64,000 bases of DNA from Oopsacas minuta (Eukaryota > Animalia > Porifera). Both the position numbers and the translations under genes were made by a program. The stretch's first letter is position 1; each line of letters begins with the position of its first letter. Location: positions 434,001-498,000 of the forward strand of contig JAKMXF010000321.1 of NCBI GenBank assembly GCA_024704765.1, given 5' to 3'. Shown piece by piece: positions 12,955 through 47,948 of the stretch. The notes below the pieces were generated by a model that worked only from the letters and a program-made list of their open reading frames with translations, was not told the origin of the DNA and searched no databases.

Positions 12955-13544
12955 AGTATGCGTTACTAGAGATTATTACAGTATATCTTAGATTTATCTG
13001 ATCTGATAGTATTATAGTTTGACAGTTCAATCAAGCTAGGGTAATTATCCAAATATATTAAATAAAATGTTATTTCCTCTCTGCTGTGAAACGATGTTAC
13101 TCATATGTGGAATCTCGTTAATACGAACACCATGGATGGTCAAAAATGTGTTCGCTTTATCCGGAGTAATGGCAATCGAATACCCATTATAGGGACCTGG
13201 TTTTGTGTAAATATGCGTTCATCTTTATCAGGAAATTCGTATTAACCCTGTGTTCTATGAGATTCCACGGTATAATATTGAATAGTAATGGATTAGAGTC
13301 AACTCCTGTTATATCGATGCTCAAGGAACCGATATAGTTACTCCGATATAAGCAACGAAATTTGTTTGACGGTTTGGGACCATATTTGTACTATTTCAAA
13401 CTTTGACATATGCGGGTATTTAGCTATATCCACTTATATATAACGGAGGATGACTGTAATTGGGACGTTTTCGAAGAAAATATATACAGCCAAACCAGTT
13501 TTCTTACTAATTTTACTTATAGTATAAACTTGCTATTCAGTAGA

Positions 13545-21400: not shown

Positions 21401-21805
21401 AATCAATACTGGAGAGACAAACTTGATAGTTTAATTCATTACCCGTTAGAACTCGATATGACTGAATACACACTATCAAAAGCACAGGTCTCTCTTCAAT
21501 ATGAACTCTACGGTGTGTCTAACCATTTCGGAGGTCTGGGGGGTGGTCATTATACTGCATATGCTAAACAAAAGAATAATAGTAAATGGTATAATTTCGA
21601 TGATAGTTCTGTGACTTCATTCGCACAAAACGATTCAGTAGTGACCAAAGCTGGCTACCTTCTATTCTACGTAAAGAAAACATGCATTCCTTTAGCACCA
21701 GCCGTTGCCAAGGAGGAAAAAGTTGAAATCAAAGACGCAGATTCGGATCATGACGATGTTGACGATAATGCTGTCTCCGAATCAGTGGGAAACGACGAAA
21801 CCTAG
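18464..21805 (+). CDS. USP15: Ubiquitin-specific protease USP4/11/15 family (DUSP-UBL-catalytic), intronless
   Basis: DUSP (WYLIHIRWFKQWK, PGPIDN), Cys box GLSNLGNTCFMNS, QQDSQE, His box HFGGLGGGHYTA, WYNFDD. Confidence 0.93.
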   Translation: MSSSPTQPEIELEKSSPLKAKGDGENGQEEVENLIPPEENGKTINSNDLGSTEAQTEGDMTQSDPTNPSEGDQHDTNEVEQPERSDPSSQNGNADDIMDTTNIPPEVENQADDVQVNGVAEKENSKADDVDSDPEDNPVIIEAPTYDLQKSEIQAQLSKPLLSGQKWYLIHIRWFKQWKRYVGYDNWDKSSAGEEVGRPGPIDNTSLLEHAKLRRHQVDEIDYKLVPEDAWKKLASWYGLAPDSRAISRRVVEYGKFVKQCKVEIYPLELKACLFPKESDFKIVRISRCDTIRVLEKKIRKAFSIEQSKEVRVYNRYMTYTYELIKDLNLEAQDVGLFDGQCVLLEVQNQDASWPRTNHATRSMQMPSNAGVTTRSQAHSTYSSTNSNYNYPYSNNYGYYSGRQPTTPGLCGLSNLGNTCFMNSGLQCLIHIPPLIEYFENDTYLKEINTKNPLGMKGELAKSFGELIKAMWSGDYAYLAPRDYKLTVGKFAPTFSGYAQQDSQEHISFLLDGLHEDLNRVMNKPYIELKELDKPDDIAAQESWDRHLMRNKSIIVDTFQGQYKSTLVCPECNKVSITFDPFMYLSLPLPIKKTRNIKLTLITLNPANRPTIFKVKIPKNSSVAELCEELYKLCGIEADRLVVCDVYSHRFHKIFEHSESVNGITERDDIFVYETPISSMDDSDLICLPMYNRELRRTQYTSIGTHSYVHHYLFGMPLVLPIPRDKTTYKDLYKICVYFMSRYIIIPEDYKVQLKQAAQAEQAKDDVDMENSDSGNDSDDKEDKKSNTDIQDGTIDTNNDPETGGDENPIEDEAVRSKPDSDDEPVGEMEVEGASAQSTSSYAYVPDDFDISQYPADMFKLKLVNAYGSAEMGELRDDENCLKLFNRSVIAMEWNSKYRHFYSESSLRDISEDESVHKKDIKREIHLADCIKLFTEKEILSKDDPWYCPVCEDFRQASKQLELWKIPDCLVIHLKRFSYNQYWRDKLDSLIHYPLELDMTEYTLSKAQVSLQYELYGVSNHFGGLGGGHYTAYAKQKNNSKWYNFDDSSVTSFAQNDSVVTKAGYLLFYVKKTCIPLAPAVAKEEKVEIKDADSDHDDVDDNAVSESVGNDET

Positions 21806-22770: not shown

Positions 22771-24849
22771 ATGACAGACGACCAGCTGAGTCAAATGAAA
22801 AAGTCACTTCGAGCAGTTTTGATATCCTGCCCTGAAGGAACTCCTCTTGCTAAGGTGGAATCAGATTACCGATCGTTTATGGGAGAATCACTTTCTTATC
22901 GACAATTTGGGTTTAGAAATATTGAATCTTTCCTCCGTTCTATCCCAGATACTGTCCGTGTAAGCGGGCCAATTGCTTATGGTGTTGCGTGTGAGGAAAT
23001 TAAGCATGTTACGAAGTTAATAAATAATCAAAGAAAAGTAACTTCAAACCTTAAGAATGTTAGAAGAGCGAGGGATAATGCTAGACTTCAACCTTTCTTC
23101 CCTCATCCGAGTATTCCAAACAAATACTCTTGGGGTTCTGGTGCTCCTCAACACGCCCCACTGTACCCTCCTTTGCCTCCTCCTCATCATCCAATACATT
23201 ATTCTCAATACGGTCATCGACACCATGGACCCCCTAGACACCCTGGTCCTCATGGTCCCCAGCAAATGAGACACCCTCCATTTTATCCACCACCAGTGAC
23301 GCCTCCTCTTCCTTCCCATTCAGATTTCCACCCAAGTTCTCATCCTCCGAAATTCCAACCGTCCGCTCCCCTAAATTCTCCACACTCGCACTCCCCAAGT
23401 CCAACTCCTAGCGAAACCGGAGATGAAATAATATTCAGTAACGCTGAAATAATAGAATTGCTTAAAAAGGAAGACGTCTACATCACAAAACAGCTAGTAA
23501 TTATCCTATCTCTAGCATTCCCTTATATATACAGAGGTTCACATATTGCTATTCTAGACCTGAGTATTCCCTTATGTATTGACATTGCTACTGCAGTAGC
23601 TTTTGATTGTGAAGAGGAGCTGGAAGGAACACCAGCTATCCTCGTATGTAAAATGCAAGATGTCTATGACTGCACTCAACTGGAGAAATCTTCTAGAGTT
23701 AAACTATTTAATGTTAATGAATTCAAAAGTACAAAGGTCAAAGTTCTTACAATAAAATTCCCTGAGATGATTAATCTTCTAACCAGTAATAACGATCATT
23801 TCTATAAGTCAGTAACGTTTGTAATATTCGTGGATATTAAACCAGCTCATATGCTGATAATTCATGATCTTCTTCCCCCTGAATTACAATATCTTTTCTT
23901 ATTCACTTCTTCCTGTAACGGAATTTCATATAAGCCTCCACATGTTGTAATACGAAAATGGGGTACTCAATATACAGACGTAGCTTATAATAATGAAACC
24001 ATTATTGATAAGTTAAAGTATAAATTATCTTACCTGAATAATTCTCCTATACCCTCTCCTTCTACGTTACTCCCAACACCCCCTGTTGTGACCCAACAAA
24101 CGACAACACAACCACCACCTCGACCAACCGAACAACAACAACAACAACAGGCCGCCAAGAAGCCCACACCTTCAGAAGAGAATTCTCCAGTTAGAACAAA
24201 CTGTGTTTCCGCTACAGAAAGGACTAGGTTTCCATCTGATGGTCTTAGGCATTTATCCGAAGCTTCTTTCAAAGCTAATATAAACATGTTTATACAAGCA
24301 GGCCCTAATAAAGGTAAAACCTGTCTCCTAATAGAATTTGCTCTTAGTAAAGTTGATGTTACACAAGATATGCTACAAGTAATACTTACTGCTCCTAATC
24401 CCAAAACATCTGGACAATTATTCCTGAGATTAAAGGAATACGTTAATTTACAAGATATAACTGAGGTTAGAGCATTTGGGTATACTGAAGGAAATTTTGA
24501 GAAATTATCTCTTTACATTAGTGAACAAAAGGTTCATGTTTTAGTCATTGAAAATTCTCATTTACCTGCTCTACAATCTAAGAGCCCTGCTTTGTTAAAG
24601 AACTGTAAACTACTGGGCTGTGACGAGCTATATGGGAGTTTTTATACTAAACAAGTGCCTACTACGGTTTCTGGTTGTTTTAGAAAACTTAACCCGAATA
24701 CTACACAGATTATAACGATTGCTCATCCGAGTGACAAGGAGGAAATATTACAATCTCACATGCCGAAGCCTTTCTGGCATATTAAGGAAGAAATTGGAAG
24801 TACTGAACAGAAGGAAAAGTATCTAGTTACGTTTTTCAATAACAATTAA
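22771..24849 (+). CDS. LOTUS/OST-HTH domain + Pro/His-rich linker + two degenerate DEAD-box RecA1-like modules
   Basis: LRAVLISCPEGTPLAKVESDYRSFMGESLSYRQFGFRNIESFLRSIPDTV resembles the TDRD5/TDRD7 LOTUS domain. C-terminal module has AGPNKGKT, LQVILTAPN, CDELY, QIITIAH. Confidence 0.8.
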   Translation: MTDDQLSQMKKSLRAVLISCPEGTPLAKVESDYRSFMGESLSYRQFGFRNIESFLRSIPDTVRVSGPIAYGVACEEIKHVTKLINNQRKVTSNLKNVRRARDNARLQPFFPHPSIPNKYSWGSGAPQHAPLYPPLPPPHHPIHYSQYGHRHHGPPRHPGPHGPQQMRHPPFYPPPVTPPLPSHSDFHPSSHPPKFQPSAPLNSPHSHSPSPTPSETGDEIIFSNAEIIELLKKEDVYITKQLVIILSLAFPYIYRGSHIAILDLSIPLCIDIATAVAFDCEEELEGTPAILVCKMQDVYDCTQLEKSSRVKLFNVNEFKSTKVKVLTIKFPEMINLLTSNNDHFYKSVTFVIFVDIKPAHMLIIHDLLPPELQYLFLFTSSCNGISYKPPHVVIRKWGTQYTDVAYNNETIIDKLKYKLSYLNNSPIPSPSTLLPTPPVVTQQTTTQPPPRPTEQQQQQQAAKKPTPSEENSPVRTNCVSATERTRFPSDGLRHLSEASFKANINMFIQAGPNKGKTCLLIEFALSKVDVTQDMLQVILTAPNPKTSGQLFLRLKEYVNLQDITEVRAFGYTEGNFEKLSLYISEQKVHVLVIENSHLPALQSKSPALLKNCKLLGCDELYGSFYTKQVPTTVSGCFRKLNPNTTQIITIAHPSDKEEILQSHMPKPFWHIKEEIGSTEQKEKYLVTFFNNN

Positions 24850-25068
24850 TTGGCTATATTGACATGTTCGATGGTTAAACTAAATTCTAATCCATAATCT
24901 AACTTTTGCTACCTGTACACAGATATAATCTGTCATGGATCTTCAAGGTTAACCGAATAACTTTTACATATATTTGGTGATTATCTTAATGTTACGCTCT
25001 CTTTTTCTGGGTATTATATCTTTCAATAATTATATCTTTCAATAATTATATCTTGCAAGTTCATTACA

Positions 25069-25254
25069 CAGTGGAGTCTCCAAAAACGGACACTCCGAGA
25101 AGCGGACAACTCCATACAACGGACAAACCTTCTGGCACGGATTGAATTTGCCAAGCATGTAATTACTGCTTAAGCAGTCTCCGAGGAGCGGACAACTCCC
25201 TATAACGGACAGAAGCGATGTCCCCAACGTGTCCGTTATTCGGAGACTTTACTG
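25069..25254. mobile_element. MITE family C copy
   Basis: Very similar to 22179-22348, same orientation. Confidence 0.88.
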
Positions 25255-25515
25255 TATTATCGTTTTGTTTCAGGTCGAGCCGATTACTGCCTGTGAGTTA
25301 CAAGTGTAATGAATAGTATGTTGGCAGCCAATTCCCTCCAGAATTTTGACATTTGTACACATTTTTATATGTAAACTATTGGTTAATTTCCCTTTCTTCT
25401 CTTTTGAAAATTGTTAATTGTTAAATTCTCGCAGTTAGAAACGTGAAAATATTTATTTTAAGTAATTACGTATTCACAGAACAGCAAACATATCTTACAA
25501 CATTCAAAATTCTTA

Positions 25516-26940
25516 TCAATTATCAAAATTGAGAAATCTCATTGCATCGATTGTCCTAATTATAAAATTTAGCAAAGCACCAACACCAAACGGGATAATA
25601 GTATTAAACACACTAATAGAGTAATCTCCCAGAAATGCAATCTCAAAACGTTCTTTACTGGCAGATATCATGCTCAATTCTAGCTTCATATCATTCTTAA
25701 ACTTATCCATACCTTCCTCAATTACAAAATGTGTAATAGCATTTTCATCTTCTGATAGAACTGAGTCACTGAACTTTTCCAATTTTGTATTAAGAGCTAT
25801 TATAGCATCACTCATCAGCCAAACACTTATGAATTGGTACATGTATATGAACGGTGTTCTAAACGCGATCAAAACATCTAGTCTATCATTTGTCTTGCCA
25901 ATTTCTGCCAGTTTCTGGGTGAAACCAATATTATCTGATCCTACATAGCTTGTGAATAGACTGGTTAGTATTAGGAAAACTGCAATGATATTTATTGTAG
26001 CAACGTAGTGAACGACTTTTGAATATTCCTTAACACGACTAGTTAATTCATAATATGCTAGAATTGGCCTTTGAATTTTCAAACTCCAATTTTCCATGTT
26101 GCCTGCTTTTATGAAATCTTTCGATTGCATAACTGCGATTTTAACTTGATATTGTAACTCTTCACATATGTATCTAACTGTAATACATGCAAACACAGGG
26201 CTCAAATGCCAGTGTATTGTGATAATATACGTCAAATATTTGTACCATAAATTGTGTTCCTCGTTGTCATGATTCGTAGGGTTCTTAGTCTCCAATTCTA
26301 GTGGGAAGATTTCTATATACGTGTTAACCCATGATAAGCTTTTAAACTTGCTGAAAATAATACAAGCCATAAGGAATGGGAGAATTATTATAATCAAATA
26401 TGCGAAGAAGATTGCTATTCCAGAGAAGATCTTGTTTTTACTAGCAGGAAAACTGAGTTCGTCTTTTGTAGATGGAGCTAACGGAATTCTGAAAGTTATT
26501 CGCTTGAAAATATCCGAGTTTACAAAAATGAAGTAGCAAGAACCAAGGGAAATAAGCGAATCAATCAAATCTGTAACGAATAATACTTCTCCAATTATAT
26601 CATTATTTAATGAGGTAGAGTTACGACTGTTTCTCACATTCTCATCAATCCAGAATAGAACGAACTGGAATACAACTTGTGCCGTGAAAAGTACGAAAAT
26701 TAACGCTTGACCAATTCTCATAACACATTTTCCAATTTTGTTACATTTTTCCGATTGTTGGTAACGTTTTGGTAAAACTTTGGTTGAATTCGAGATAACA
26801 TATCGAATGAATTCAAGTGTTAAAAAGCTATATAAGATTACTGGAGTATACCATAATAATTTTCTTAGATATAGCACTGAACATGTTACACGATTCCTAC
26901 TGCCCTGGGCGAGTAGAGGGGTCATTTCCTGAGCTAGCAT
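25516..26940 (-). CDS. Multipass membrane protein, gustatory-receptor-like / 7TM ion channel (7TMIC) architecture
   Basis: 474-aa intronless ORF with about 8 hydrophobic segments, a long amphipathic helix after the fifth, and a split terminal segment. The ORF is solid; the family call is inferred. Confidence 0.6.
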   Translation of the reverse strand: MLAQEMTPLLAQGSRNRVTCSVLYLRKLLWYTPVILYSFLTLEFIRYVISNSTKVLPKRYQQSEKCNKIGKCVMRIGQALIFVLFTAQVVFQFVLFWIDENVRNSRNSTSLNNDIIGEVLFVTDLIDSLISLGSCYFIFVNSDIFKRITFRIPLAPSTKDELSFPASKNKIFSGIAIFFAYLIIIILPFLMACIIFSKFKSLSWVNTYIEIFPLELETKNPTNHDNEEHNLWYKYLTYIITIHWHLSPVFACITVRYICEELQYQVKIAVMQSKDFIKAGNMENWSLKIQRPILAYYELTSRVKEYSKVVHYVATINIIAVFLILTSLFTSYVGSDNIGFTQKLAEIGKTNDRLDVLIAFRTPFIYMYQFISVWLMSDAIIALNTKLEKFSDSVLSEDENAITHFVIEEGMDKFKNDMKLELSMISASKERFEIAFLGDYSISVFNTIIPFGVGALLNFIIRTIDAMRFLNFDN

Positions 26941-27254
26941 TCACAATAAATAAATTTATATTTTCACAAAATTTACATAATTTAGTTATTTTATACAATT
27001 ATTATTTTCAGCAATTTCTATATAAGTAATCGGTAATTATTTTATGGATTTTTGTGGTATTTTTCCCAGATTATGTTTACATGATTTGGGAATAAAGTTA
27101 CTCTCAATTTTCCTACACAAATCATGAGAGTAGTTTACTATTACAATTAGTATTACATGATGCCTTATTAAATATCTATGTGTTTTCCTATCCTTTGCAC
27201 TGTTTGATCTATTTTTATTTGATATTTAGACATTCCATAACACACATATATCTA

Positions 27255-29207
27255 ATGTCGCTAACAAACCCAATAAAATCAACTCTAATTAGCCTCATTG
27301 AGGAGCATAAGGTCGATATCGAAGTTATCCCAGATTTCTACTTACACACATTTGCATATCTGTTGGGAAGAGAGAGCCTAGTTCTAGAAGGATTTGAAGT
27401 TAACCTATCTATTGCATTATTTGATTTATTCGTGTTAGAACAAGCTAAAAATTATGAGACTGACAAACATATTCATCTGATATATTTCGGTTCTAATAGC
27501 AGAACAATCTCTAAGATCTCCTCACTAAACCCCCCTATACTCTCAGATAGTACTCCCCCGACTCCTATAGTAGAATTAAATCTACAACAACTATGTCAGT
27601 TAAATCAGAATAATATTCCTCGGCTCAAGGATGTATCCGTTACCCTTGTCTTATTCCTAATCGATGATCTTATTTCTAGTCTTATATTCCAACCGAATTG
27701 GCAAATTATTGTGATACCTATAACAAAGTTTGAAGGTTCATGCCAGAATATATCTGTAAACTTTTTGAAAATTGCACAGAGTAGTGACGTCATTAGAATT
27801 GAGCGAGTGCAAGAACGGATATCTAAAATATCATTAAATGAAAATATTCCTCAATCAGAAATAGCTACACAGAATCATTCTTATCCAACTAATACAATTG
27901 AAATTGTTGCTTCATCTGCTCAATTAATGTGTAAGAACCATGGATTCGCTATAGATATGAATGATACTTTACTTCCCTCGCTTATATACACACTCCTAGG
28001 GGAGAATGTCATTATGCATACTTACAGTGAGATTGACTTTATACATGTAGTCGGTATTGTTGCTTCTGAGAATCAAACCGGTGAATATGGTAATTTATTT
28101 ATTTGTATAGAAAGTCTTGAAGACCGTCAGAAACTCCTAGACTTCAAACGTTCCGTAGATTTCCATGAGTCTCAAATCTTAGAGACAATCAATAACGAAT
28201 CCCATAGCAATTATTTAATTACCGCAACTGAATTTAACCAAATCAAATCCTCACCTATCCTAAAAGGAAAAAGTGGGATAATTGCACTACAATCTTCTAT
28301 ACCAAAAGAATTAACTAGATTTCTAACTAACCTCCCTACTGGCTATACAGTATTAATTGGTACTGCATGTTATAATGAAGATTTGTTAAAGATTATGACC
28401 CAATTGAGATTTGTACTATTCTCTGGTTATCCTATACGTCCTGTTAAATGTGTTGGTTATAAATCACATGAATTTCAACTATTAGATCTCTCTAAACTGC
28501 CTTATATACCATTGTTTAAACCAAGACCATTGCATGCACACTCTCCTAAGGCCAAGGGAAGGACTAAAAAGAAACCTACAAAAAATAGTGAGCCTATCCC
28601 AGACGAGCCTATATTTATAGACAATAGATTTAGCCTTGAAGATCATTCAAATATTCTTTTAGAATCCCTACTACAATCTCCCTGTAATATCGTAGTACAA
28701 TATGTATCTTCATTTGACTGTAATACTTATTTGAATCATTTGATATCAGTAGTTGATATCACCAGTGAGACGCTACAGGTTATTGTCCATGGAGATTTAG
28801 CATCAATGAATTTTATGTTCGAACAATTCGCTACAAGCGATATAAGGCATAACTGTAATGTGTTTTGTTATTCTAGTGGAAAATTGAGTTCTTTAAAATC
28901 ATTACTGATAACTGAGAAGACACAGATCCTATTTATACCATCTAGTGAGTTCCTTGTTGTTAATAGATCAGCTGTTCTGACAGAGAACTGCAGGATTATG
29001 ATGTATATAGCTATTAACAATACTAATGATTTGCTACCAGGAAGTACATTAGCTTGTCTATATGATGAAGTTCAATTGAGTACACAGATTATAGTAGTTA
29101 CGAAAGATCACTTGAGAATAGATTCTAACTATATTAACACACCCTACTGTCATGTACAGGAATCTAGTGAGCTAGTTAAAGAACAATTTATTCTTACTTT
29201 TTTGTAA
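27255..29207 (+). CDS. Pseudo-helicase paralogue 2 (about 3 degenerate RecA1-like modules)
   Basis: Intronless; first in-frame ATG 27255. C-terminal ISVVDITSETLQVIV...TQIIVV...EQFILTFL aligns with LSKVDVTQDMLQVIL...TQIITI...EKYLVTFF of the LOTUS protein. Confidence 0.75.
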   Translation: MSLTNPIKSTLISLIEEHKVDIEVIPDFYLHTFAYLLGRESLVLEGFEVNLSIALFDLFVLEQAKNYETDKHIHLIYFGSNSRTISKISSLNPPILSDSTPPTPIVELNLQQLCQLNQNNIPRLKDVSVTLVLFLIDDLISSLIFQPNWQIIVIPITKFEGSCQNISVNFLKIAQSSDVIRIERVQERISKISLNENIPQSEIATQNHSYPTNTIEIVASSAQLMCKNHGFAIDMNDTLLPSLIYTLLGENVIMHTYSEIDFIHVVGIVASENQTGEYGNLFICIESLEDRQKLLDFKRSVDFHESQILETINNESHSNYLITATEFNQIKSSPILKGKSGIIALQSSIPKELTRFLTNLPTGYTVLIGTACYNEDLLKIMTQLRFVLFSGYPIRPVKCVGYKSHEFQLLDLSKLPYIPLFKPRPLHAHSPKAKGRTKKKPTKNSEPIPDEPIFIDNRFSLEDHSNILLESLLQSPCNIVVQYVSSFDCNTYLNHLISVVDITSETLQVIVHGDLASMNFMFEQFATSDIRHNCNVFCYSSGKLSSLKSLLITEKTQILFIPSSEFLVVNRSAVLTENCRIMMYIAINNTNDLLPGSTLACLYDEVQLSTQIIVVTKDHLRIDSNYINTPYCHVQESSELVKEQFILTFL

Positions 29208-29669
29208 TTATTCTTTCTAGATTTTATCTATTAAACATAGACATTGAATTTCCAGACAAATTCTGGTCTGACCAGCATTTACAGCAAAACTATTGTACTT
29301 CGTAGTCATATTTCTATTACCATTAATGAGAGTATATTTCCAGCTTTTATGAGGATAATGACAAGTATTTGGAAAGTAAAAGATTGGGATCTATAATGAA
29401 CTCAAATTATGCTTTAATGGGTTATATTATTGCTACTTTGGGTAACATACAGTGCAACCTCCATCGGGGAATCGAGGTAGCATTTTTCTTCCTCCTAGCA
29501 CCCCGTTTGTGGAGGTTCCACTATAATACATTCCAGGTTACGAATAGCTACACATTTACGTAGATTATTGATAAAACTCCATTATTTTTACTTAACTGTC
29601 TCTGAATACAAATAAAATCTGTAGAATTTAGATATTTTTAGATTTTTGTACAATTAGTTAAGCGTTGAA

Positions 29670-32600
29670 ATGGCAAGTTGGGATTCGGACTTTGAATTCC
29701 CTGATTCTCTAGCTAAAACAACCATGGATGAAATGCAATTATCTCAACTCAGTGATAAATATGCTGTAAATATAACCACTTTAAAATCCATTTGTAACAC
29801 AGTTAATAAATATTTCATCAACGGCCGTTCTATTTTGATTACAGAGTACCCTTCCGCGTTACGTACCTGCATACTTGAACACTTCATCTTCAAGTTATTA
29901 CAATTGAATTCTGGAAAGATCATACTTTTACACATTTCTGAAGTTGAACAAGTTTTGATTCCAACGTTAAATATTAAATATTCAAAGTTATTTGGTGGTG
30001 TCTTAACAAATACATTGGATACTACTAAGAGAATATTCACGATATCTAATGACCAATACTCGCATGGATTATTTACATTAATACCCGAACTCACTCGTGA
30101 TAAAATTGTATACTTTTATACTGGAAATAATTCGTTTAACGTCTCGCTAATGCCTGGATTACTGAATGTTCAGAACTTCATTCTTGCTTCTAAGTTATTG
30201 CCGAGCTCAGCTTGTGATATTCCATACTCTTTTGTTCATTTATTCGTAGGAGATCACAATCTTTTACACTCAAATGTGTACTATTTAAATCCTAGTAAAA
30301 CAAAGGTTAACTCAGAGAATTCTGATAGGAAATCAACGCTATCTTTCCCAACAACTATCCAAGGCTCATTATGTGTCCCTCTTGCACCTATTCCAGCCCC
30401 TACATGTACCCCAATCGGAGCTCCTATTGATATCTCATTGAATTCACTCATTCAGAAACACAACATTCCAGAACATACTCGTGTATTAGAATACCTAACC
30501 TGTAATACAATGGAGTGTATGGCGAGAGGAGAATCAGTTGTAATAGACGGATTCTCTCTAGCTGTACTTACTTGTTTGTTAGATTATATAATCACAAAGA
30601 GGTTAGAGACAACTGAAAATTGTTTACGTACTTTGGTTGATTCTACAGAGAATTTTCGATATGAATTGAGCAAACTAGGAGTAATGCAAACTACCGATTT
30701 TTCATATGTAACTCATGATTTTGATTATTCGAAAAGAGTATTATTCATAAAGCTATTAACAATGAGAACTCCTGTCTTGAATTCAGTCCTTGATAATTGT
30801 ATACTGGTTAGTTATACTAAAACTGGCTGTAGTTTAAATAAAGTCAGATTGTTCGATGGTCCAATCGTCTCTCTTACTACATCTAGTAAGCTTTTAGACC
30901 GTACGCTAGCAAATATTACTAAAACTTATACCCGCTTGAGTCATTCAGAAGAAGTAAGGTATGGAGTCATAGATCAAATTCCTGTTCACACCACCAGAGT
31001 AGTAAAACAACAATTTCCAGGACAATACTTCCGAAATTTAGACCAGAAATTAGAAGAAATAATTAATGCAGAACAAGATGCTATCACAGAACCTATAATC
31101 ATTCCAACAGTAAGTACAGCCCCAGATACTGAACTGTTGTTAGGGCTCGTTCAAAAACACAATATTATTGAAGATACCTGTAATCTAGAATATATGATAT
31201 CTACTGTAATGGAATGTATAGAGAGAGGAGATTCAATTGCAATAGAAGGATTCGACAAGAACATACTCACTTGTTTATTGGATTATATTATTGTTAAGAG
31301 AATGGAATCTTTTCGCAGTCCATACTTACACACTATAATTGATTCTACAAAAGTTATTCGAAAACAATTGATAAATTTAGAAATAAGGAGTATTAATGGT
31401 TTTAATGATTCATTAAGTTCACCAAGACAGGTATTATTCACTCAACTGAATCTTTCAAATTTGCATCTACTGAATTCAGAAAATAAAAAGCTTATACTCA
31501 TTAATTATACAAATTATGGTGACAGATTTCCGATTTTGAATCTATTACCCTGTCTCTTTGTATCACTATCGCATTCACGAATTAGTAAAGAGCTGCTAGC
31601 CAAAGTTTCTAGGCCGTTTCTACTCATTACTTATTTGAAAGATTCAAAAACAGTAGAATATAATCGTTTGAATGATTTCAATGTTCATATCCCAAACGAA
31701 CCTCAGAAAACATCAAATTGTATTATGGATACGAATGTGTTACCCAAGAAAATAGATCAATTAATTGATATTGATAGTTTACTACTTCGTCTCTCAAATA
31801 AATATAATTGCTATCTGAATTCAAATGTCTGTTCTACTGTGAATTATTTTATCGAAGAAGGAGAGTCTTTGATTGTCGATAACTTTTCCCAGCTTCAACT
31901 CCTTTATATTATTGATTTCGTTCTTACCATAAAGACGTTTAGAAGGATTTCTTTCTCAGAAACAAAGACTCTGATTTTATGTAGTGAGGAGGATTTACAA
32001 ACTAAACTACAGGTATTGGACGTTATAAGGTCTAGTCAATATTCCTGTATAAACTCAGATGGCACTTTTGATTATAATGGAAAGGTTTTGATATTGCATG
32101 ATATTTCAAGTAAATTTGGTAATATACTAAAGGAACGCTTAAAGTTAGACAAATCTCATCTACTAATACATCTTTACAAAAAGCCACAAGGAAGATTCCA
32201 ACGTAGTTTCTCTCTAATGAACTGCAATGTATTAGGATTGTGTGTAGATAGAACAGAATTATTTCCAAAGAAAAAAACCTTCATTCATCTCACACAGAAT
32301 GAATTTGATCAACTTGAGGTTAATGACTGTAGAGACAATATCAAGAAAACAAAGAGTAAGAATTTTAACTATCCAAATGATGATAAAGTTACAGATGATA
32401 ATAAACTTAAAGATACTCAAAGTATTCTTACAACTTCTGAGAATTTACCTCCTATAACTAACCCTTTATTCCTTAATAAACAGAACCCAATCACTACATT
32501 AATATGCCAGCTGTTTAATAAGCATCAAATAGAACTACTATACACAGATTTGCCTACAGAGCTATATAACGTAACCTTGACTACTCTTATGGATCATAGG

Positions 32601-34340
32601 AATGTTTGTATAGACGGATTTGCTTATACATTAGTAACTCCATTATTGACTGTATTCGCACTTGAATGCGTAGAGCTAGGTATTCCAGTGAAAATACATT
32701 ATGGGAACGACGTTGAATTGCCCGTAGATAAATTGAAAGATATCCCTGTAATTCCAAATATAGATATAATACAAACTTTAACAGAGAATAATGACCCCAG
32801 ACATCTATGGATATTAATTGGAACAGATCATAGACAGCTTAAACAGATTTTCTCTCTTATAAAGACAACTCATCAATGTATTTTCTTGTTATCCTATGCA
32901 GTATCGTTAATATTGGAGCACTCAGGGCTTAATATTACTAGAATATATAAGTTCATGGATTGTGTGTTTGTTTGTTCTTTTAATAAACATTTGCTTTATG
33001 TATCTTCTAAGGATGGATTCGATACAGAAAACTTGCCTTTCTCTCCAAGAATTTTTACTTCAGACACTCCGACCTCTCCAATAGTACCAATGGACATTAC
33101 ACCAGCAAAATCCACTGAAACCCAATTACCAGACAAGATTCGACTCAATATTATGCAAGATTCAATAATTGAAAATTCTTCTGTGAAAATTGATTTTAAT
33201 GATGTAGAAAACACAGATTTTGAATTGTCAGATTCTTGTAACGATTTATCCATACATAAAACTGTATTTCCTGAACTAAATCAGGAGTTTGTTGTTGCAT
33301 TAGAAGAAGCTTGTTTGCCTGAAAATTGTACTGAAAGTTCTACTAGATTAATTAATTTAACAGGTAACCATACTCCTGACATTCCTAATACAGATAATCT
33401 AGAAAGCAATGATGAATCTAATTTAAATATTATCTGTAATAATTCTGAAGATAATGATACTTGTATTGACAGTGATATTTTGAAGGTTGATAGTGAATTG
33501 CTGCAGAAAGAAAGCGATTGTTCAAAAATGGAAGAGAAATTATCTGAGAATAAAGAGGTTGACGAATCTCCTTTGAAAGAGACACAAATTTTGGCTGAAA
33601 GTTCTGCGACTACGAATACGATTTCAACAGAACAAGTTAATGAAAAGAACATATTGTCCACAGATTATATAACAAAACTAGTCTCAGAAGAGCTCTCAGA
33701 ATTATGCCCTGTAGCACTACCAGATAATACAATAATAGAATCAAATACTACCGAGCCTATAATAATATCACCCTCTGACCTCGGCATCCAATTAGTAACT
33801 TCTCCTTTGCAAGCAGGCCTCCATACAATCCTATACAGCACAGATACTACATACTACACCATTATAATACGTCATATAGCTGACGTATTGGATTGTCTAC
33901 GTAATACATTACAGGTTGTAATTACGTCTCAAAACCCTGATATTTGTTCTCAACTTTTAAAACTAGCTTCAATTCACTTACACACAGCCCGTGGATTCTT
34001 ATACAGGGCCGGTTCAATTCACAGTTTGTGTGATTACATTGTACAACAAGAATTACAGATTCTCTCTATTCCAGTTTCATCTCTCGTTTCTTTAATTCAA
34101 ACCGATTCCAGTCTGTTTCTAGATAATCATATTCTAGTTTATGTTGAGGACCCTAAAATCAAATATTTAGATAATCCTATTTTAATCAAAGTTCTGACGA
34201 AGAACATAGCTTTTCAATATATTTTCATATTACCAGACAAGAAACCAAGATTTGATAATTTCCAATCTCCTCATTGTGAAATCAAATTTTCTGATTTCTC
34301 AAAGAATAATGAAAGTTATTTTGTAGAATTTAATTTTTAG
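29670..34340 (+). CDS. Pseudo-helicase paralogue 3 (about 6 degenerate RecA1-like modules), 1556 aa
   Basis: Intronless ORF with internal repeats (LIQKHNI...RGESVVIDGF...LTCLLDYII and LVQKHNI...RGDSIAIEGF...LTCLLDYII) and the shared C-terminal module (VLDCLRNTLQVVI...ESYFVEF). Confidence 0.8.
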   Translation: MASWDSDFEFPDSLAKTTMDEMQLSQLSDKYAVNITTLKSICNTVNKYFINGRSILITEYPSALRTCILEHFIFKLLQLNSGKIILLHISEVEQVLIPTLNIKYSKLFGGVLTNTLDTTKRIFTISNDQYSHGLFTLIPELTRDKIVYFYTGNNSFNVSLMPGLLNVQNFILASKLLPSSACDIPYSFVHLFVGDHNLLHSNVYYLNPSKTKVNSENSDRKSTLSFPTTIQGSLCVPLAPIPAPTCTPIGAPIDISLNSLIQKHNIPEHTRVLEYLTCNTMECMARGESVVIDGFSLAVLTCLLDYIITKRLETTENCLRTLVDSTENFRYELSKLGVMQTTDFSYVTHDFDYSKRVLFIKLLTMRTPVLNSVLDNCILVSYTKTGCSLNKVRLFDGPIVSLTTSSKLLDRTLANITKTYTRLSHSEEVRYGVIDQIPVHTTRVVKQQFPGQYFRNLDQKLEEIINAEQDAITEPIIIPTVSTAPDTELLLGLVQKHNIIEDTCNLEYMISTVMECIERGDSIAIEGFDKNILTCLLDYIIVKRMESFRSPYLHTIIDSTKVIRKQLINLEIRSINGFNDSLSSPRQVLFTQLNLSNLHLLNSENKKLILINYTNYGDRFPILNLLPCLFVSLSHSRISKELLAKVSRPFLLITYLKDSKTVEYNRLNDFNVHIPNEPQKTSNCIMDTNVLPKKIDQLIDIDSLLLRLSNKYNCYLNSNVCSTVNYFIEEGESLIVDNFSQLQLLYIIDFVLTIKTFRRISFSETKTLILCSEEDLQTKLQVLDVIRSSQYSCINSDGTFDYNGKVLILHDISSKFGNILKERLKLDKSHLLIHLYKKPQGRFQRSFSLMNCNVLGLCVDRTELFPKKKTFIHLTQNEFDQLEVNDCRDNIKKTKSKNFNYPNDDKVTDDNKLKDTQSILTTSENLPPITNPLFLNKQNPITTLICQLFNKHQIELLYTDLPTELYNVTLTTLMDHRNVCIDGFAYTLVTPLLTVFALECVELGIPVKIHYGNDVELPVDKLKDIPVIPNIDIIQTLTENNDPRHLWILIGTDHRQLKQIFSLIKTTHQCIFLLSYAVSLILEHSGLNITRIYKFMDCVFVCSFNKHLLYVSSKDGFDTENLPFSPRIFTSDTPTSPIVPMDITPAKSTETQLPDKIRLNIMQDSIIENSSVKIDFNDVENTDFELSDSCNDLSIHKTVFPELNQEFVVALEEACLPENCTESSTRLINLTGNHTPDIPNTDNLESNDESNLNIICNNSEDNDTCIDSDILKVDSELLQKESDCSKMEEKLSENKEVDESPLKETQILAESSATTNTISTEQVNEKNILSTDYITKLVSEELSELCPVALPDNTIIESNTTEPIIISPSDLGIQLVTSPLQAGLHTILYSTDTTYYTIIIRHIADVLDCLRNTLQVVITSQNPDICSQLLKLASIHLHTARGFLYRAGSIHSLCDYIVQQELQILSIPVSSLVSLIQTDSSLFLDNHILVYVEDPKIKYLDNPILIKVLTKNIAFQYIFILPDKKPRFDNFQSPHCEIKFSDFSKNNESYFVEFNF

Positions 34341-34490
34341 AATTAATTAGTCAATTCCTAATTTGCTTGTATAATTATTGCTTCATATTATTCAGTGTAA
34401 TGATTATTATATGAATATTTAGATGAGCTCCTAGAAACGAAACTTATTAAATAATTTCTTTAGCTTAATTTAGATATTATTTTCAATATT

Positions 34491-37400
34491 ATGTCAACTA
34501 CTACCAATACTGATAAAGAACAAGCAATTCCAGCTAACATAATCTCGTGTAGTGAATTGGAGAATTTACCAGATAATTCTAGTATTCCCACTAACGAAGT
34601 TACACCGAATGTAAAGGAACAAATATTTAGTAATATTCCTACAGAACAAATTATACAAAACTTCCAAGAACTTAAACTTAACACTGAACTATATACGAAC
34701 CTAAAAGTTAACGGTTATGTCAAACCAACAGACATTCAATCACACATTCTATTCCCGTTAGTTCAAGGTAAATCAATGCTAATTGAATCTAAACCAGGGA
34801 CTGGTAAGCTAACCTCACTCTATATCTTATTACTACAACGCTGTAGACTCAGTAGCATGCGTATACAAGGTATTATCGTTACAGGAAATACGGTGTATTG
34901 TTCAACAATTGAAATGAATCTAAGCTTGCTATCAGAAGAAGTCACGGCGATTAACCTAGATGAACTTGAGGTCACTGACCCAGGAGAGGTAGCAGACCAC
35001 CAATTTATGATGGGAAGTGAGCAGAGCATTGCATTACTTTCCGGGGTAATTAACGTCATTAAAATACCTATAATACTATGTCTATACAATATTAATATAC
35101 AGCAGAGCGTTTTAATGGATAAAATAACTTCAAATTTGACAAAATTCAATCAGATCGTTATTATGAGAGATCAAACTATTACCATAGACTACAAATTGAT
35201 TACAAAACTCCTTACACAAAATGCAATGCATTTATCAGTTGATATGCAAATGTCTGGTCCTAGTCATTTAACGGGGATGTTTAAACAAATCCACCAGATA
35301 GAAACTATCCCCAAACCACAAGATAACAGTAAGCAAGATATCTCACCAGCAAATACAGAATATTCACCTGCAAAACAGGAACAAATCCAAGAAACGCCGA
35401 ATTTAGAAGTATTACGCAAACTCGAGTCAGGAGACAAGATAATTGAATTCTTCCTTAAACACGATTTATCATTAAAAGTCCCAACCTTTTATGTTTTCGT
35501 CTTCAACTATTTATTCAAAGGTTTGAGTGTTGTGCAAACAGGATACAAATCTGTTGAACGTATAAACTTAATAAGTTTAGTTGTAAAAGAGTTTGACAGA
35601 CATCTGACAGCTCCCGTACACGTAGTAATATGTCATGATGGTAAAGAATTCAAAGATTCTAAATTATTGGCAAACCCATCCGTGTACATTTTTCAAGATG
35701 AAGAAACATTAAATGATATTCCTAAAGACAAGACGATAATAATTGCATCAAGCTCGAAAACTTTATCAGTTCTCAAATCTTTCCCTAATTTATTCCACTC
35801 AACTGGTCGTATTATCGTCTTCTACAATATTTCCATTGGTAAATTCAAAGATATTACACAGCTATTTCCACAAGGGTTGCTGTTCCTTGCTATGCTTAAA
35901 TGTCAAATAGAATCAATAGCTGGTGATATTCAAATACCATTTGTAAATGTAGCAAAGCATGAAAATAACCTCAACATTGAGCCTTTCTCGGGAGCTAAGA
36001 TATCACCAGACGATTTGAGTTGTTTAGAAGAGCTTACTCGTGAGAAAACGAGTTTACCCCAGAAATTTAACACAAACCAAGATTTCCATAAATCCAGATT
36101 CCATACTACGAACAGAGAAGACCATAAGTTTGAAGATTCACGTACAATGCCGCGCGTCGTTAGTATAAATCTATTACAAACAATCTCAGCTAAACACGGG
36201 ATAAATCCTAAAGCAATCTTACCATTCTACCCAGAAGTATTCTCATTCTCTATTCGGGGAGATAATATTCTTCTAATTGGGTTCCAGCAGTCGGAATATT
36301 CGTCTATTGTTAATATAGTTAGTTTAGAGAGAGTTAGTAATAGTACTGAGCCTGGCTGTCAAGTACTAGTATACTATGGTTCTGGGGAAGAAGCAGATCT
36401 CTGTGATTATCCTAATTGTAAACGTCTGCTGTCTGGAAATGAGAATTCTATCTTAGACATATGTCCGTTAGTTAGTGTTGATACTATACGGGATATAACA
36501 CGTTTGTATACCAAGCAAAATGCGAAATTTTACGCCCTTAAGAAGTTAATTGTTCTCGTGGGAGTAACACTTGATGAGTGTATTGAGATAATTTCTAATC
36601 AGATACCGTGTCAGCTGATATTCATTTTGACTGATATTCCAACTGATGACCATTTTAATGATTTACCCGTTTCATTTGTGAGATTTCTAAATCACAACAA
36701 TTCTGTTAAGATTGAGAAAGTTGGACAAGATGATTCTCTGTTAACTGACGAAAATACACAAGAATCTTCTCCCGAATTGGTTAATGAATCACCATCAGAT
36801 ATCCCAGATACAATCGATAATACATCTAAGCCTGTTCGCCCCACACAACAAACATCTATGGACAACGAATTTCCTCAACAAACAACCTCATTAGCGCGAG
36901 CTATACTTGTCAGAAATAATGAGACAGTAGTAGTTGATAATATGGAATTTTTCACTACAGCATTATCCCATACAATTGGTGGAAATAATATTCTAATACG
37001 CGAATTCTCCAAGGAAATTATCACTAGCTTTGTAACGATATTATACCAAGATTACTGTGTTAATATCCCAGGCAATGACTATGTGCTATTCTGTCTTGGT
37101 TCACGAATATCCGATTTATTTTTGCCATCATTTAAGTGTCCATCTTCTCTCTGGCTCCAGAACGATAAAAACATCTCCGTACAGCCCAATTTTCAAAAAG
37201 AAGCATATTTTCTAACAATTACCAGACTCCTAAATATGATACACACAGAACTTGAATGTTTAGTAAATCGAACTTGGCTGATAGTATTCATTGGTCTTTC
37301 ACATAAAGAAATTGAATCATGTATCCCATACATTCCCCTCTCCAATCAGTATTTGTTTATCCTAAGCATAGAACATCCTCAGTTTAAGAAGTTCATGTCA

Positions 37401-38192
37401 GCACCATACGTGGTTATAAGGAAAACACGTAGAAAACTAGTCACAACTGAATGGGTGCATAAAAGTAAAATGAAATCATTCAAAACTGAATACAAACAAA
37501 CAAATTCTATTCAACAATATGATAATAATGTCGAAACAACAACCACAACAACGATTCCACCTACGCAGGATTCCAAGGAAAATAATCGAGCGTTAGCATT
37601 ACATGCAATAGCTTCATCAATATTAAACTCTGGAAAGCATGTATTACTGCAAGCAACAAGATCATCCGGTAAAACTACATTAGCATTTGATTACTCAATT
37701 TATAATATAGACAGAAATAGCAAATGTGTTCAAGTTATATTTAGTTCTCCGAGTATTTTTAAGAGCGTTAAGCTATTCACTGATCTTAATCAGTATTTGA
37801 AACGTAATAATGAGACTGAAGTGAAAGCTTTTTTGCATGCAAAAGGCGATTCGTCACAATTATCTGCTTACCTTGAAAATATTGGTTTTCATGTTCTCGT
37901 GACGACTAATGACAGTCTGAGTAAATTAATAAAAGAATCGAGTATTATCCATGCATGTGGTCTAATAGTGTTTGACGAGTTATACTCCAATGCAGACGTA
38001 GACCAGGTAACTGCAATGTTGCCAACTTTATTTCATGACTCTATACCTCGTGGTATACAATGTATCTTTATAACAAGTTCGTCAGAAGATGTAACAAAAC
38101 TCTTACGGTTTATTCCAATGTCGTTTTTCTATATTCATTCTACTCGTGAAACTCTCCAGAAATCTACTTATTCCATAGATTGTTATTTTTGA
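34491..38192 (+). CDS. Pseudo-helicase paralogue 4 (about 5 modules), 1233 aa
   Basis: N-terminal FQELKL...GYVKPTDIQ...GTGKL is an eIF4A/DDX19-like Q motif plus broken Walker A. Last module has ATRSSGKT and FDELY. No motif VI anywhere. Confidence 0.8.
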   Translation: MSTTTNTDKEQAIPANIISCSELENLPDNSSIPTNEVTPNVKEQIFSNIPTEQIIQNFQELKLNTELYTNLKVNGYVKPTDIQSHILFPLVQGKSMLIESKPGTGKLTSLYILLLQRCRLSSMRIQGIIVTGNTVYCSTIEMNLSLLSEEVTAINLDELEVTDPGEVADHQFMMGSEQSIALLSGVINVIKIPIILCLYNINIQQSVLMDKITSNLTKFNQIVIMRDQTITIDYKLITKLLTQNAMHLSVDMQMSGPSHLTGMFKQIHQIETIPKPQDNSKQDISPANTEYSPAKQEQIQETPNLEVLRKLESGDKIIEFFLKHDLSLKVPTFYVFVFNYLFKGLSVVQTGYKSVERINLISLVVKEFDRHLTAPVHVVICHDGKEFKDSKLLANPSVYIFQDEETLNDIPKDKTIIIASSSKTLSVLKSFPNLFHSTGRIIVFYNISIGKFKDITQLFPQGLLFLAMLKCQIESIAGDIQIPFVNVAKHENNLNIEPFSGAKISPDDLSCLEELTREKTSLPQKFNTNQDFHKSRFHTTNREDHKFEDSRTMPRVVSINLLQTISAKHGINPKAILPFYPEVFSFSIRGDNILLIGFQQSEYSSIVNIVSLERVSNSTEPGCQVLVYYGSGEEADLCDYPNCKRLLSGNENSILDICPLVSVDTIRDITRLYTKQNAKFYALKKLIVLVGVTLDECIEIISNQIPCQLIFILTDIPTDDHFNDLPVSFVRFLNHNNSVKIEKVGQDDSLLTDENTQESSPELVNESPSDIPDTIDNTSKPVRPTQQTSMDNEFPQQTTSLARAILVRNNETVVVDNMEFFTTALSHTIGGNNILIREFSKEIITSFVTILYQDYCVNIPGNDYVLFCLGSRISDLFLPSFKCPSSLWLQNDKNISVQPNFQKEAYFLTITRLLNMIHTELECLVNRTWLIVFIGLSHKEIESCIPYIPLSNQYLFILSIEHPQFKKFMSAPYVVIRKTRRKLVTTEWVHKSKMKSFKTEYKQTNSIQQYDNNVETTTTTTIPPTQDSKENNRALALHAIASSILNSGKHVLLQATRSSGKTTLAFDYSIYNIDRNSKCVQVIFSSPSIFKSVKLFTDLNQYLKRNNETEVKAFLHAKGDSSQLSAYLENIGFHVLVTTNDSLSKLIKESSIIHACGLIVFDELYSNADVDQVTAMLPTLFHDSIPRGIQCIFITSSSEDVTKLLRFIPMSFFYIHSTRETLQKSTYSIDCYF

Positions 38193-39287
38193 TATTTTGT
38201 ATTGCGTATTGAGCTTTGAATTTATAGTATTTCTACGATTCCACTAATAGCCCAGAATATTCAATATTATAACTGATCTACGTAGTTTTATCATTATTAA
38301 ATGAAATAGTAATAATAGAATACACGAGGTGGAAATACGAGATTCTCATTATGAAAGTATTTATTATTTATAATTATTTCATTAGACACGAGGACATTAA
38401 TCTACATTAACTGGAATGGTTGTGGAACTATAATGATATAATTGCTTCCACTTTCATTGTGAATTCATGCTTACTTATCTGATTATTATATCCAAAGAAA
38501 AACTTTCAATTCTATTAATTTGTAAATTATTGAGAAACAAACATTTTCCGAACTCGATTATTTACTGACTTAGGTTTGTTGTCAAAGCAAACTACAGTCA
38601 ACTCTCGTCAATACGAATACGGTCAACAGGTATTCTACAATATACACCTTATAAAGTAGTTCTCGGTTACTTTAAACTCGGTTTAAGACGTACTTCTCTT
38701 GTACGTACTATTTTTGTTCCCCCGAGGGGTTACGTCTTATCCGAGTTCTACTATACAGCCGAACGTCTGAGGTCTGGGCATTGTCTTCCGGAGGGTTCCC
38801 AACCCTGTTTAGGGAGGTACTCAGATGTCAGGCTGTATTTCAATGAATATTACTTGAGTTAATACATATTACGAACATGCGGATAGGGAATACATATTCC
38901 TGCTATCTGATTAAAGTAAGGATATTGAAAGCTGTATGTGTGATCGGAGTTACCTATTACTGTTCGTTAACTTAAATACAATAAATCAGGTGATTCAAGT
39001 AAGGGCATTTATCTGAAATACTCTTACTTTATCATGAAAGTATTCAGGAGCCTCGCGTTCTGTAGAATGATACCCACGGGTTGTAACGATTGTATAAAGT
39101 TCATCGAAAGAGTAACATTTATCTATTTAACAAAAGGTTATTTCCAGTTTCTTATTAAGCAGAATAGTGCTTATAGTTACATCATATCGAAAGTGAATTT
39201 ATCAGTAATACACAATATTAATTGCCAGCCAATTCTGTATTAGTATAAATAAACTTGTATAAATATATCTCAAATCAAAGGAATTTA

Positions 39288-40094
39288 ATGGATACAATCC
39301 TACCAAGAGGTCCTCAATGCGATGATACACAGTACCATCAAGACATGAATTATGCGCATACTGTTATGACAAGGAAATCGAATGAGAAAACAATTTCCGA
39401 AGATCGTCCAGATTATATACACAAGAGAAAACCAACTCCACGCATCGTACAGGAAGAAATTAAATCAGATCAAATTTATGTAAATGTGAAATCTGGTAGT
39501 ACTGAAGAGCAGTTAGGTCTTAGTCAAGAGATATACACTTTAAAAATAAATATTCATCAGTTGATAAAAGATAAAGAAGAACTTAAAGACCAAATACATT
39601 TGTTGAAAGATCAAAATTCTGAGTTAAGTTCCAAATTAACAAATCAGGCTATAAGTGACCTGAAAAGTTACGAAGAAGAGAAACGACAATGGAAGTTGGA
39701 TCGAGAAGGTCTAGAAAATACAATTAGTCTGTGTAAAGGATATATTCGATGCCAAGATGAAGATAAATTACACCAAGGAGAAAAGATTTCAATGTTAGAA
39801 ATAGCCCTGAAAGCACATCATTCATCTCCTGAATATGCTTACAATCCTCGCGATGCAATGTATTCTAGTCATAGCAATACTATACAGCAATACCGTGGAC
39901 ATACCTCTGATATCCCAACCTATGGGAAGCCAGGATCTTCACCTGCCTATCACTCTGCTTATTCGCATTCTCATCATACGACAGTACCTCTTGTATATGA
40001 CCCAAACTTAACTTGTGATCACTGCGGATCTAAATTCTTATATGATGAAATACAGAAGTTGAGAGAACATTTAAATACTATGCATCCAAACTGA
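39288..40094 (+). CDS. Coiled-coil protein with C-terminal C2H2/UBZ-like zinc finger
   Basis: Central heptad-rich segment; terminal CDHCGSKFLYDEIQKLREHLNTMH. First ATG 39288. Confidence 0.65.
   Translation: MDTILPRGPQCDDTQYHQDMNYAHTVMTRKSNEKTISEDRPDYIHKRKPTPRIVQEEIKSDQIYVNVKSGSTEEQLGLSQEIYTLKINIHQLIKDKEELKDQIHLLKDQNSELSSKLTNQAISDLKSYEEEKRQWKLDREGLENTISLCKGYIRCQDEDKLHQGEKISMLEIALKAHHSSPEYAYNPRDAMYSSHSNTIQQYRGHTSDIPTYGKPGSSPAYHSAYSHSHHTTVPLVYDPNLTCDHCGSKFLYDEIQKLREHLNTMHPN

Positions 40095-40564: not shown

Positions 40565-47948
<7,384 letters not shown>

Follow-up and report, generated by a model that had tools for sequence, protein, structure and literature searches.

A tandem array of four genes in the sponge Oopsacas minuta encodes proteins made of serial RecA1-like domains, which derive from the first RecA domain of DEAD-box helicases and stand without the second (RecA2); the array is conserved between species and under selection, and one of its proteins is fused to a LOTUS domain of the TDRD type. 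The genes, here called A, B, C and D, occupy positions 22771-38192 of the window, the 64,000-nucleotide (nt) stretch of DNA that we analysed (assembly GCA_024704765.1, contig JAKMXF010000321.1, 434,001-498,000 of the forward strand), and all coordinates are in window numbering. Each is an uninterrupted open reading frame (ORF) on the + strand with no internal stop codon, starting exactly where an initial annotation of this DNA had placed it (22771, 27255, 29670 and 34491), and the gaps between genes are small, 460 nt between B and C and 150 nt between C and D. Open frames of 650 to 1556 codons in DNA of 33% G+C, intact across seven genomes, are far beyond chance. The genes and their modules (the end module, Ct, is the last of each protein) are as follows.

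22771..24849, + strand: gene A, ORF of 692 residues; eLOTUS-like domain, proline-rich linker, inner RecA1-like module, second linker and end module; Pfam finds LOTUS and, weakly, DEAD
22771..23070, + strand: LOTUS domain of A, eLOTUS-like (Pfam PF12872 at 8.6e-14; PDB sequence matches)
23455..23958, + strand: inner module of A (residues 229-396), RecA1-like and motif-less, recovered by a D4-seeded profile
24238..24846, + strand: end module of A (A-Ct, residues 490-692), with AGPxKGKT (Walker A) and CDELY (motif II) kept
27255..29207, + strand: gene B, ORF of 650 residues from its ATG (675 from an upstream GTG), three modules
Within gene B, + strand: B1, B2 and B-Ct (residues 1-205, 206-400 and 468-650), from profile searches; B-Ct is without ATP motifs
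29670..34340, + strand: gene C, ORF of 1556 residues; five contiguous inner modules, an acidic Ser/Thr-rich linker of 240 residues and an end module
29697..32426, + strand: C1 to C4, inner modules (residues 10-221, 241-480, 483-702 and about 701-919), from jackhmmer
32442..33044, + strand: C5, a divergent and probable fifth inner module (residues about 925-1125)
33765..34337, + strand: end module of C (residues 1366-1556), Walker A and DE lost
34491..38192, + strand: gene D, ORF of 1233 residues; five modules with linkers of 39-66 residues between them
34638..35276, + strand: D1 (residues 50-262), eIF4A-like RecA1; Q motif and GTGK-L kept, motifs II and III lost
35475..37445, + strand: D2, D3 and D4 (residues 329-493, 560-731 and 795-985), motif-less and RecA1-like
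37563..38189, + strand: D5, end module of D (residues 1025-1233), with QAxRxSGKT and FDELY kept

All four proteins end in a common module of about 200 residues, as the initial annotation had supposed and as BLASTP among A to D bears out: the ends of A and D are 29% identical over 194 residues (E = 2e-19), and further matches join the ends of A and C (4e-06), B and C (1e-04) and A and B (2e-04 or 9e-07, depending on direction). The remaining modules were mapped by iterative profile searches (jackhmmer) over 24 proteins, those of the window and their orthologues from six syntenic loci. A profile seeded with D5 finds the end module of each of the four proteins in all of the species, and one seeded with D4 finds D2, D3 and D4 in every species together with residues 229-396 of A and two modules of B. 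Residues 241-480 of C, used as a seed, recover four full modules and the start of a fifth in the window's C protein and, in other species' C genes, three to nine modules; BLASTP between C proteins of different species likewise gives matches that are out of register, repeating every 220-245 residues or so. The profile boundaries differ slightly from the list for the end modules of A (490-688), B (468-649) and C (1371-1556) and for B1 (10 to about 200) and B2 (223-362). The total is 16 modules (two in A, three in B, six in C, five in D), the same number and the same division as had been estimated by inspection, with C5 the weakest, and the module consensus lines contain the L..KH-like helix and following G-x-S/N-hydrophobic strand that had been described as opening each repeat. 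Judged from its sequence C5 is probably a genuine inner module, since its first 60 or so residues match the C-module profile (E = 3e-11) and the remainder weakly resembles the profile of the other inner modules (31%, E = 5e-04).

Links between the module classes appear in profile-profile comparison. With only seven orthologues per module, hhalign gave a strong link for D3 and D4 alone (94.6%), and larger module-family profiles were required for the others. The profile of the C inner modules (A5) then matches that of D2-D4 and the inner modules of A and B (A3) at 96.3% (E = 1.8e-09 over 172 columns), and B1 matches the C-inner profile at 83.7%. The end modules (A4) are joined both to the inner profile A3, at 75.9% (E = 2.3e-05) or 91.6% when jackhmmer alignments are used, and to the profile of D1 (A6), at 73.1% (E = 3.1e-05).

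The descent of these modules from the N-terminal RecA domain of DEAD-box proteins, and their homology to each other, is supported by sequence for D1 and the end modules, by profile-profile comparison for the inner modules and by predicted fold for the D4 type. D5 matches Pfam DEAD at 8.4e-16 within the whole D protein and at 4.9e-13 as an isolated module, the last module of A matches DEAD weakly, and 8 of 21 end modules match the same family when scanned singly. Against the PDB, the profile of D1 and its orthologues finds eIF4A-type chains, the best of them a probable eIF4A (2.6e-11), followed by eIF4A-I (2.8e-11), eIF4AIII (2.5e-09), Dbp5 (8e-08) and DDX6 (1e-07), with an alignment that runs from the Q motif to motif Ia. 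The corresponding profile for the end module of A finds RecA1 of Dhh1/DDX6 over 163 positions (E = 0.0017), and a pooled end-module profile finds the N-terminal domain of DDX6 (E = 0.07); the profile of D5 orthologues has no PDB match at E<=0.01, though the single D5 sequence matches Pfam DEAD. In per-module scans at E<=1 the inner modules gave no match to Pfam DEAD (0 of 29 and 0 of 33), and in the PDB searches profile A3 found nothing and A5 only two chance-level matches (E above 2), neither of them a helicase chain. Since no inner module matched DEAD or a helicase chain by sequence, structure is the decisive test for these modules.

We therefore turn to the AlphaFold2 model of D4, which was made from a 29-sequence module alignment and is confident (predicted local distance difference test score, pLDDT, of 88; predicted template modelling score, pTM, of 0.86). 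Its Foldseek matches in the PDB are mostly DEAD domains (DDX41, DDX6, DDX20, CshA, Hera, UAP56 and eIF4A) or first lobes from Ski2 and Mtr4, with one dynein chain at rank 50, and among Swiss-Prot models they are mostly DEAD-box proteins aligned at the N-terminal lobe, along with a few ORC1-type proteins and BcsE at lower template modelling (TM) scores. VIA-align gives Z scores of 10-12 over 160-180 of the 191 residues to RecA1 of Ski2, Mtr4, HsdR, eIF4AIII, eIF4A and Dhh1. A scan of 48,161 chains that is independent of Foldseek places only helicases of the superfamily 2 (SF2) type among its top 50, and the matches that were checked (the RecQ family, Ski2, Mtr4, eIF4A, DDX6 and DDX20) align at the first lobe; an ESM Atlas shape search returns DEAD/ResIII clusters only, at TM 0.59-0.66. 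By itself the predicted fold of D4 is thus that of an SF2 first RecA domain. The initial annotation's assignment of the modules to RecA1 stands on sequence, profiles and the D4 fold, and a RecA-like fold, which it had asked to see, is predicted for the D4-type module; its further attribution to DEAD-box proteins comes from the sequence links of D5, D1 and the end modules, because the fold alone reaches SF2 only.

No second lobe accompanies these domains, in agreement with what had been claimed. Helicase_C/RecA2 (PF00271) has no match in A to D (Pfam, E<=0.01), and tblastn of the 64,000-nt window with RecA2 segments of true DEAD-box proteins, which would carry motifs IV-VI, finds a single site, at 56675-57016, within a separate DDX19 gene. 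Moreover, in all species that show that end, every ORF stops no more than three residues after the last conserved Phe of the end module. The motifs for ATP and RNA binding are lost from 13 of the 16 modules: neither the end modules of B and C nor any inner module in the motif table has an ATP motif, and motifs Ia, Ib and III are degenerate in all modules. The exceptions are A-Ct, with AGPxKGKT and CDELY in all seven species, D5, with QAxRxSGK[TS] and FDELY in six of seven (locus L003 has lost both), and in part D1, which keeps the Q motif and GTGK (Leu replacing Thr) and from which motifs II and III are missing. The earlier description of the array as degenerate pseudo-helicases is consequently right for 13 modules and wrong for A-Ct and D5, where Walker A and D-E persist, and for D1 with its Q motif and GTGK. 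Positions of the structural core are retained: the strand LQVI, Gly at the GG position and the Gln that precedes motif III. The modules are neutral to acidic, and the linkers are proline-rich in A and acidic in C.

Relatives of the array are present in six other sponge assemblies (ENA), in which six loci (L001-L006) surround orthologues of D and further loci (L007 and L008) surround orthologues of A. The six orthologues of D are 1188-1251 residues long and 45-60% identical to it by BLASTP (46-62% in the alignment), and the six of A are 50-60% identical by BLASTP. Loci L001-L006 share one order, namely a B-like gene, one or two C-like genes, D, a striatin-like gene and HSP60 with a nested G-alpha-like gene; two of the A-orthologue loci have the USP gene, A, a minus-strand gene and B on the same contigs, so that the overall order USP-A-7TM-B-C-D (7TM, seven-transmembrane) is kept. 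The order is shared across species, and the whole array is therefore older than their split. Its occurrence in other sponges, where the initial annotation had suggested looking, goes together with a narrow range outside them: the end-module profile, run with HMMER over 1.84 billion representative proteins, gave 13 strong matches, all 13 from these sponge loci, followed in rank by a 101-residue fragment without a Pfam match and then by helicases with DEAD and Helicase_C domains, the better of which align at RecA1. By sequence, then, the module family is restricted to this sponge group within that collection, and the idea of a lineage-specific family holds up in an exhaustive search.

Synonymous sites between these species are mostly saturated, and the ratio of nonsynonymous to synonymous substitution rates (dN/dS) was taken from unsaturated species pairs. 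For D it is 0.17-0.20 overall and 0.09-0.21 for single modules in most pairs (D5 reaches 0.33 in one), and the motif-less D2-D4 are under constraint equal to that of D1 and D5; the N-terminal tail of D and several linkers have higher values, up to 0.70. The ratio is 0.20-0.24 for B and 0.38-0.54 for C. The array proteins are thus under purifying selection, the motif-less modules of D included. C evolves fastest and its protein varies from 1292 to 2510 residues across species; a tree of its modules shows about three old types, to which recent block duplications have been added separately in the clades L001/L004 and L002/L005/L006. In L001 two ORFs make up a split C gene (3314-9406) and in L006 the gene is fragmented (4692-9840), by a frameshift, an intron or real decay, and in L004 an additional ORF with a C-like module (60-965) lies upstream of the C gene of 2510 codons.

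Four public sequencing runs of one sample contain the region. Three have flat, DNA-like depth, and the fourth (X4, of unrecorded kind) is uneven: its depth is about 190 across C and about 500-750 across D, with a gap from 34150 to 34462. One X4 contig (29629-34074) begins 41 nt ahead of the C ATG and others begin at 34462, 29 nt ahead of the D ATG; joints were not seen in X4. This pattern is suggestive of separate, unspliced transcription of C and D. Joined just before 34462 in X4 are 19 unmatched letters, TCTTCATAAAAAAACTTAC, which might represent an allele or else a leader, either a spliced 5' exon or a trans-spliced one. The X4 contigs also carry 13 coding differences in 34006-37909 (nine nonsynonymous, four synonymous, of mixed types and without stops) that are absent from the three DNA-like runs, and these look like allelic or inter-individual variation, not editing. 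Within D there are eight nonsynonymous and four synonymous within-sample variants, again without stops, which are uninformative.

The LOTUS domain at the N-terminus of A is, by sequence comparison, of the TDRD5/TDRD7 type: among PDB sequences it matches fly FI02030p (1.3e-11), TDRD7 (1e-10) and TDRD5 (1.2e-05, aligned to residue 88). Pfam finds no Tudor domain in A, which is therefore not an orthologue of TDRD5/7. The LOTUS core is followed by a conserved helix-like segment and a basic tail, and the segment EIKHVTKLINNQRKVTS is kept in all orthologues that have an N-terminus. In other animals a C-terminal alpha-5 extension defines eLOTUS and is required for Vasa binding, and the one part of open-state Vasa that eLOTUS touches is its C-terminal RecA domain (PMC5458760); stimulation of Vasa depends on a basic disordered tail (bioRxiv 10.64898/2026.03.28.715021). 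The conserved C-terminal helix and basic tail of the A domain fit with docking to Vasa.

How might such proteins work? The explanation that we favour, and to which as a whole we give about an even chance, is that they are glass-sponge-specific, RecA1-derived, multivalent and largely non-catalytic scaffolds, with A as an adaptor of the Vasa type. Their origin is shown by the data above: the family grew from the N-terminal RecA domain of an eIF4A/DDX6-type DEAD-box helicase, and duplication of domains and of genes made strings of two, three, six and five RecA1-like domains. The DEAD-box ATPase and RNA clamp require RecA2. Because RecA2 is absent, 13 of the 16 modules are motif-less and selection is purifying, we infer that the modules are folded binding units and not enzymes. 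Such proteins would be folded beads on proline-rich or acidic disordered linkers, the usual build of ribonucleoprotein (RNP) granule organisers. The initial annotation had put forward, as a hypothesis, RNA or protein scaffolds or decoys in germline or piRNA-type granules. The end module, common to all four proteins, would be the signature of the family and plausibly a shared docking or assembly unit, and A is likely an adaptor to a Vasa-like helicase, because eLOTUS of the TDRD5/TDRD7 type binds Vasa RecA2 in other animals. A-Ct and D5 may still bind nucleotide as a switch, and the variable module number of the fast-evolving C would tune valency.

Several considerations weigh against this explanation or against parts of it. 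The confident model covers one module type, D4, and the AlphaFold2 model of nearly the whole D protein (residues 34-1233, seven-sequence alignment) is poor (pLDDT 43.6) and unusable for domain arrangement; its Foldseek matches to KaiC, Ski2 and DbpA/DEAD-box cores are a mere hint of tandem RecA-like domains. The inner modules of C are tied to the others solely by profile-profile comparison, C5 weakly so. The signal for transcription comes from one run, X4, and LOTUS domains have partners other than Vasa. Finally, A and D have selectively kept Walker A and DE, which speaks against merely inert beads there. The same retention would be expected of a split or hybrid helicase, in which A-Ct and D5 form an active ATPase cleft with an adjacent RecA1-like module or with the RecA2 of a separate protein (Vasa, in the case of A). 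We regard this as unlikely. GK[TS] and DE are conserved in seven of seven A-Ct and six of seven D5 modules despite saturated synonymous divergence, eLOTUS binds only the RecA2 of an open helicase (PMC5458760), and pairs of modules are hinted at by a two-module unit duplicated in C of L002/L005/L006 and by alternating module scores in L004; but motif V/VI and the arginine finger occur in no module, A-Ct and D5 are without the Q motif, Ia and Ib, B and C have no ATP motif at all, D has an odd number of modules, and its gene is intact in L003 even though D5 there has lost both motifs. A further version, in our judgement rather improbable, would have A act as half of a helicase in trans and the other proteins set the valency of an RNP condensate: the eLOTUS of A may grip RecA2 of an open Vasa-like helicase while its nucleotide-competent RecA1 (AGPxKGKT, DELY) pairs with that RecA2, with the result that a hybrid ATP site may form or Vasa may be barred from its own closed state, and B, C and D, docked by the C-terminal module that all four share, may contribute dead RecA1 beads in tunable number.

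The beads might instead be decoys or competitive regulators that imitate eIF4A, DDX6 or DDX19 at the N-terminal domain and absorb the cofactors binding there (MIF4G, MA3, Nup214-like), and so would damp translation, decay or export and not build granules. D1 is still eIF4A-like over the surface from Q motif to Ia, neutral-to-acidic modules favour protein over RNA partners, and C evolves fast with a changing copy number, all as might be expected of decoys; most modules, however, are less than 15% identical to real RecA1, so that partner surfaces are unlikely to have been kept, and nothing ties them to any particular cofactor, and this idea too we hold to be rather doubtful. That the modules are not helicase RecA1 at all but tandem AAA+ units of a midasin/dynein-like ring is a very improbable reading. 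It was raised by language-model features of C2 (ESM Atlas), which are nearest to AAA_5 (dynein/midasin) clusters, and by the five C inner modules being contiguous without linkers; the feature score of 0.85 lies inside the tool's stated chance range and is a lead only, no AAA lid domain was seen, sequence links lead to Pfam DEAD, eIF4A and DDX6, and the best structural matches of the inner module are almost without exception first RecA domains of SF2 proteins, apart from the dynein at rank 50 and the ORC1-type proteins of lower TM. Least credible of all is that the genes are decaying duplicates or mis-called ORFs, non-functional remnants of helicases, as the loss of catalytic motifs from most modules and the split and fragmented C genes of L001 and L006 could have suggested: ORFs of 650-2510 codons are open in seven genomes with saturated synonymous divergence, dN/dS is 0.1-0.2 in D and B, synteny is conserved, and RNA-like coverage in X4 starts just upstream of the start codons of C and D. 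An origin as a pseudogene, transposon or virus was rejected because of conserved synteny, intact ORFs and dN/dS.

The surroundings of the array contain the following. Immediately upstream of A lies an intronless USP-type deubiquitinase (18464-21805, + strand; DUSP, UBL and UCH domains; 1113 residues), which A also has as its neighbour in L007 and L008. Between A and B is a minus-strand ORF of 474 residues (25516-26940) with only a sub-threshold match to cytochrome b561; a minus-strand gene of 485-541 residues occupies the same A-B position in L003, L007 and L008, so the position is conserved within the array. Downstream of D, a segment of about 32 nt (38721-38755) between D and the striatin-like gene is a high-copy repeat: in each of the four runs its word depth reaches thousands, against about 100 elsewhere, and it has many different flanks. 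It is followed by the striatin-like ORF itself (39255-40094), which has a hint of zf-BED, and by a G-alpha-like ORF (43636-44658, minus strand) antisense within HSP60. At 54775-57112 (+ strand) is a canonical multi-exon orthologue of DDX19/Dbp5, whose first exon matches human DDX19B at E = 1e-53 and whose RecA2 exon is at 56675-57016. It lies 16.5 kb downstream of the array, and this DDX19 gene is not supported as parent of the array: D1 is 29% identical to it over 65 residues, and the D1 profile scores eIF4A far better than DDX19; D1 is no nearer to the DDX19 of the window than to eIF4A. Further out are enkurin (13410-14345, 1.9e-27) and a poly(A) polymerase (62460-63863, 6.7e-66).

A core of two lobes defines DEAD-box proteins, and to our knowledge all known regulators and pseudohelicases keep that unit; in the literature searched we found no description of proteins with serial RecA1 domains only or of fusions of LOTUS to RecA1. 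The array shows that RecA1 can serve by itself as a unit for building proteins, repeated several times over, and proteins so made have long been maintained in an animal lineage that branches deeply. The fusion of these lobes with a putative Vasa-docking eLOTUS offers a testable hypothesis for control in trans of helicase activity or of granule valency, and would add a lineage-specific component to the poorly known RNP machinery of sponge germline and stem cells. The variable module number of gene C would provide a natural series for the effects of valency on condensates. If A does act as half of a helicase, this would be a previously unknown regulation of DEAD-box proteins by domain substitution, one that also sets the valency of RNP condensates.

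Compared with the N-terminal domain of DEAD-box proteins (PF00270; eIF4A, DDX6/Dhh1, DDX19), the sponge modules have the same fold and the same order of Q-motif helices, beta-1, P-loop position and helix, but the sponge proteins carry two to six copies of RecA1 in place of one and are without RecA2 and its motifs IV-VI. The eLOTUS scaffolds of germ granules (TDRD5/Tejas, TDRD7/Tapas, Oskar and C. elegans MIP-1/EGGD-1) resemble A in having an N-terminal LOTUS domain, disordered linkers and repeated folded modules; the repeats of the sponge proteins, however, are RecA1-like and not Tudor or further LOTUS domains, and LOTUS occurs in gene A only. Pseudohelicases such as Utp25/Def and the C-terminal cassette of Brr2 are likewise derived from helicases, have lost their catalytic motifs and serve structural or regulatory roles, and TDRD12 and the fly Yb proteins are also pseudohelicases; all of these keep a two-lobed core of RecA1 and RecA2, whereas the sponge proteins have only serial lobes of the RecA1 type. 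Several nucleotide-binding-fold domains are found in one chain in KaiC, Ski2/Brr2 and dynein/midasin as well, but there they form defined rings or cassettes and are active as ATPases, whereas in the sponge proteins most of the sites are dead.

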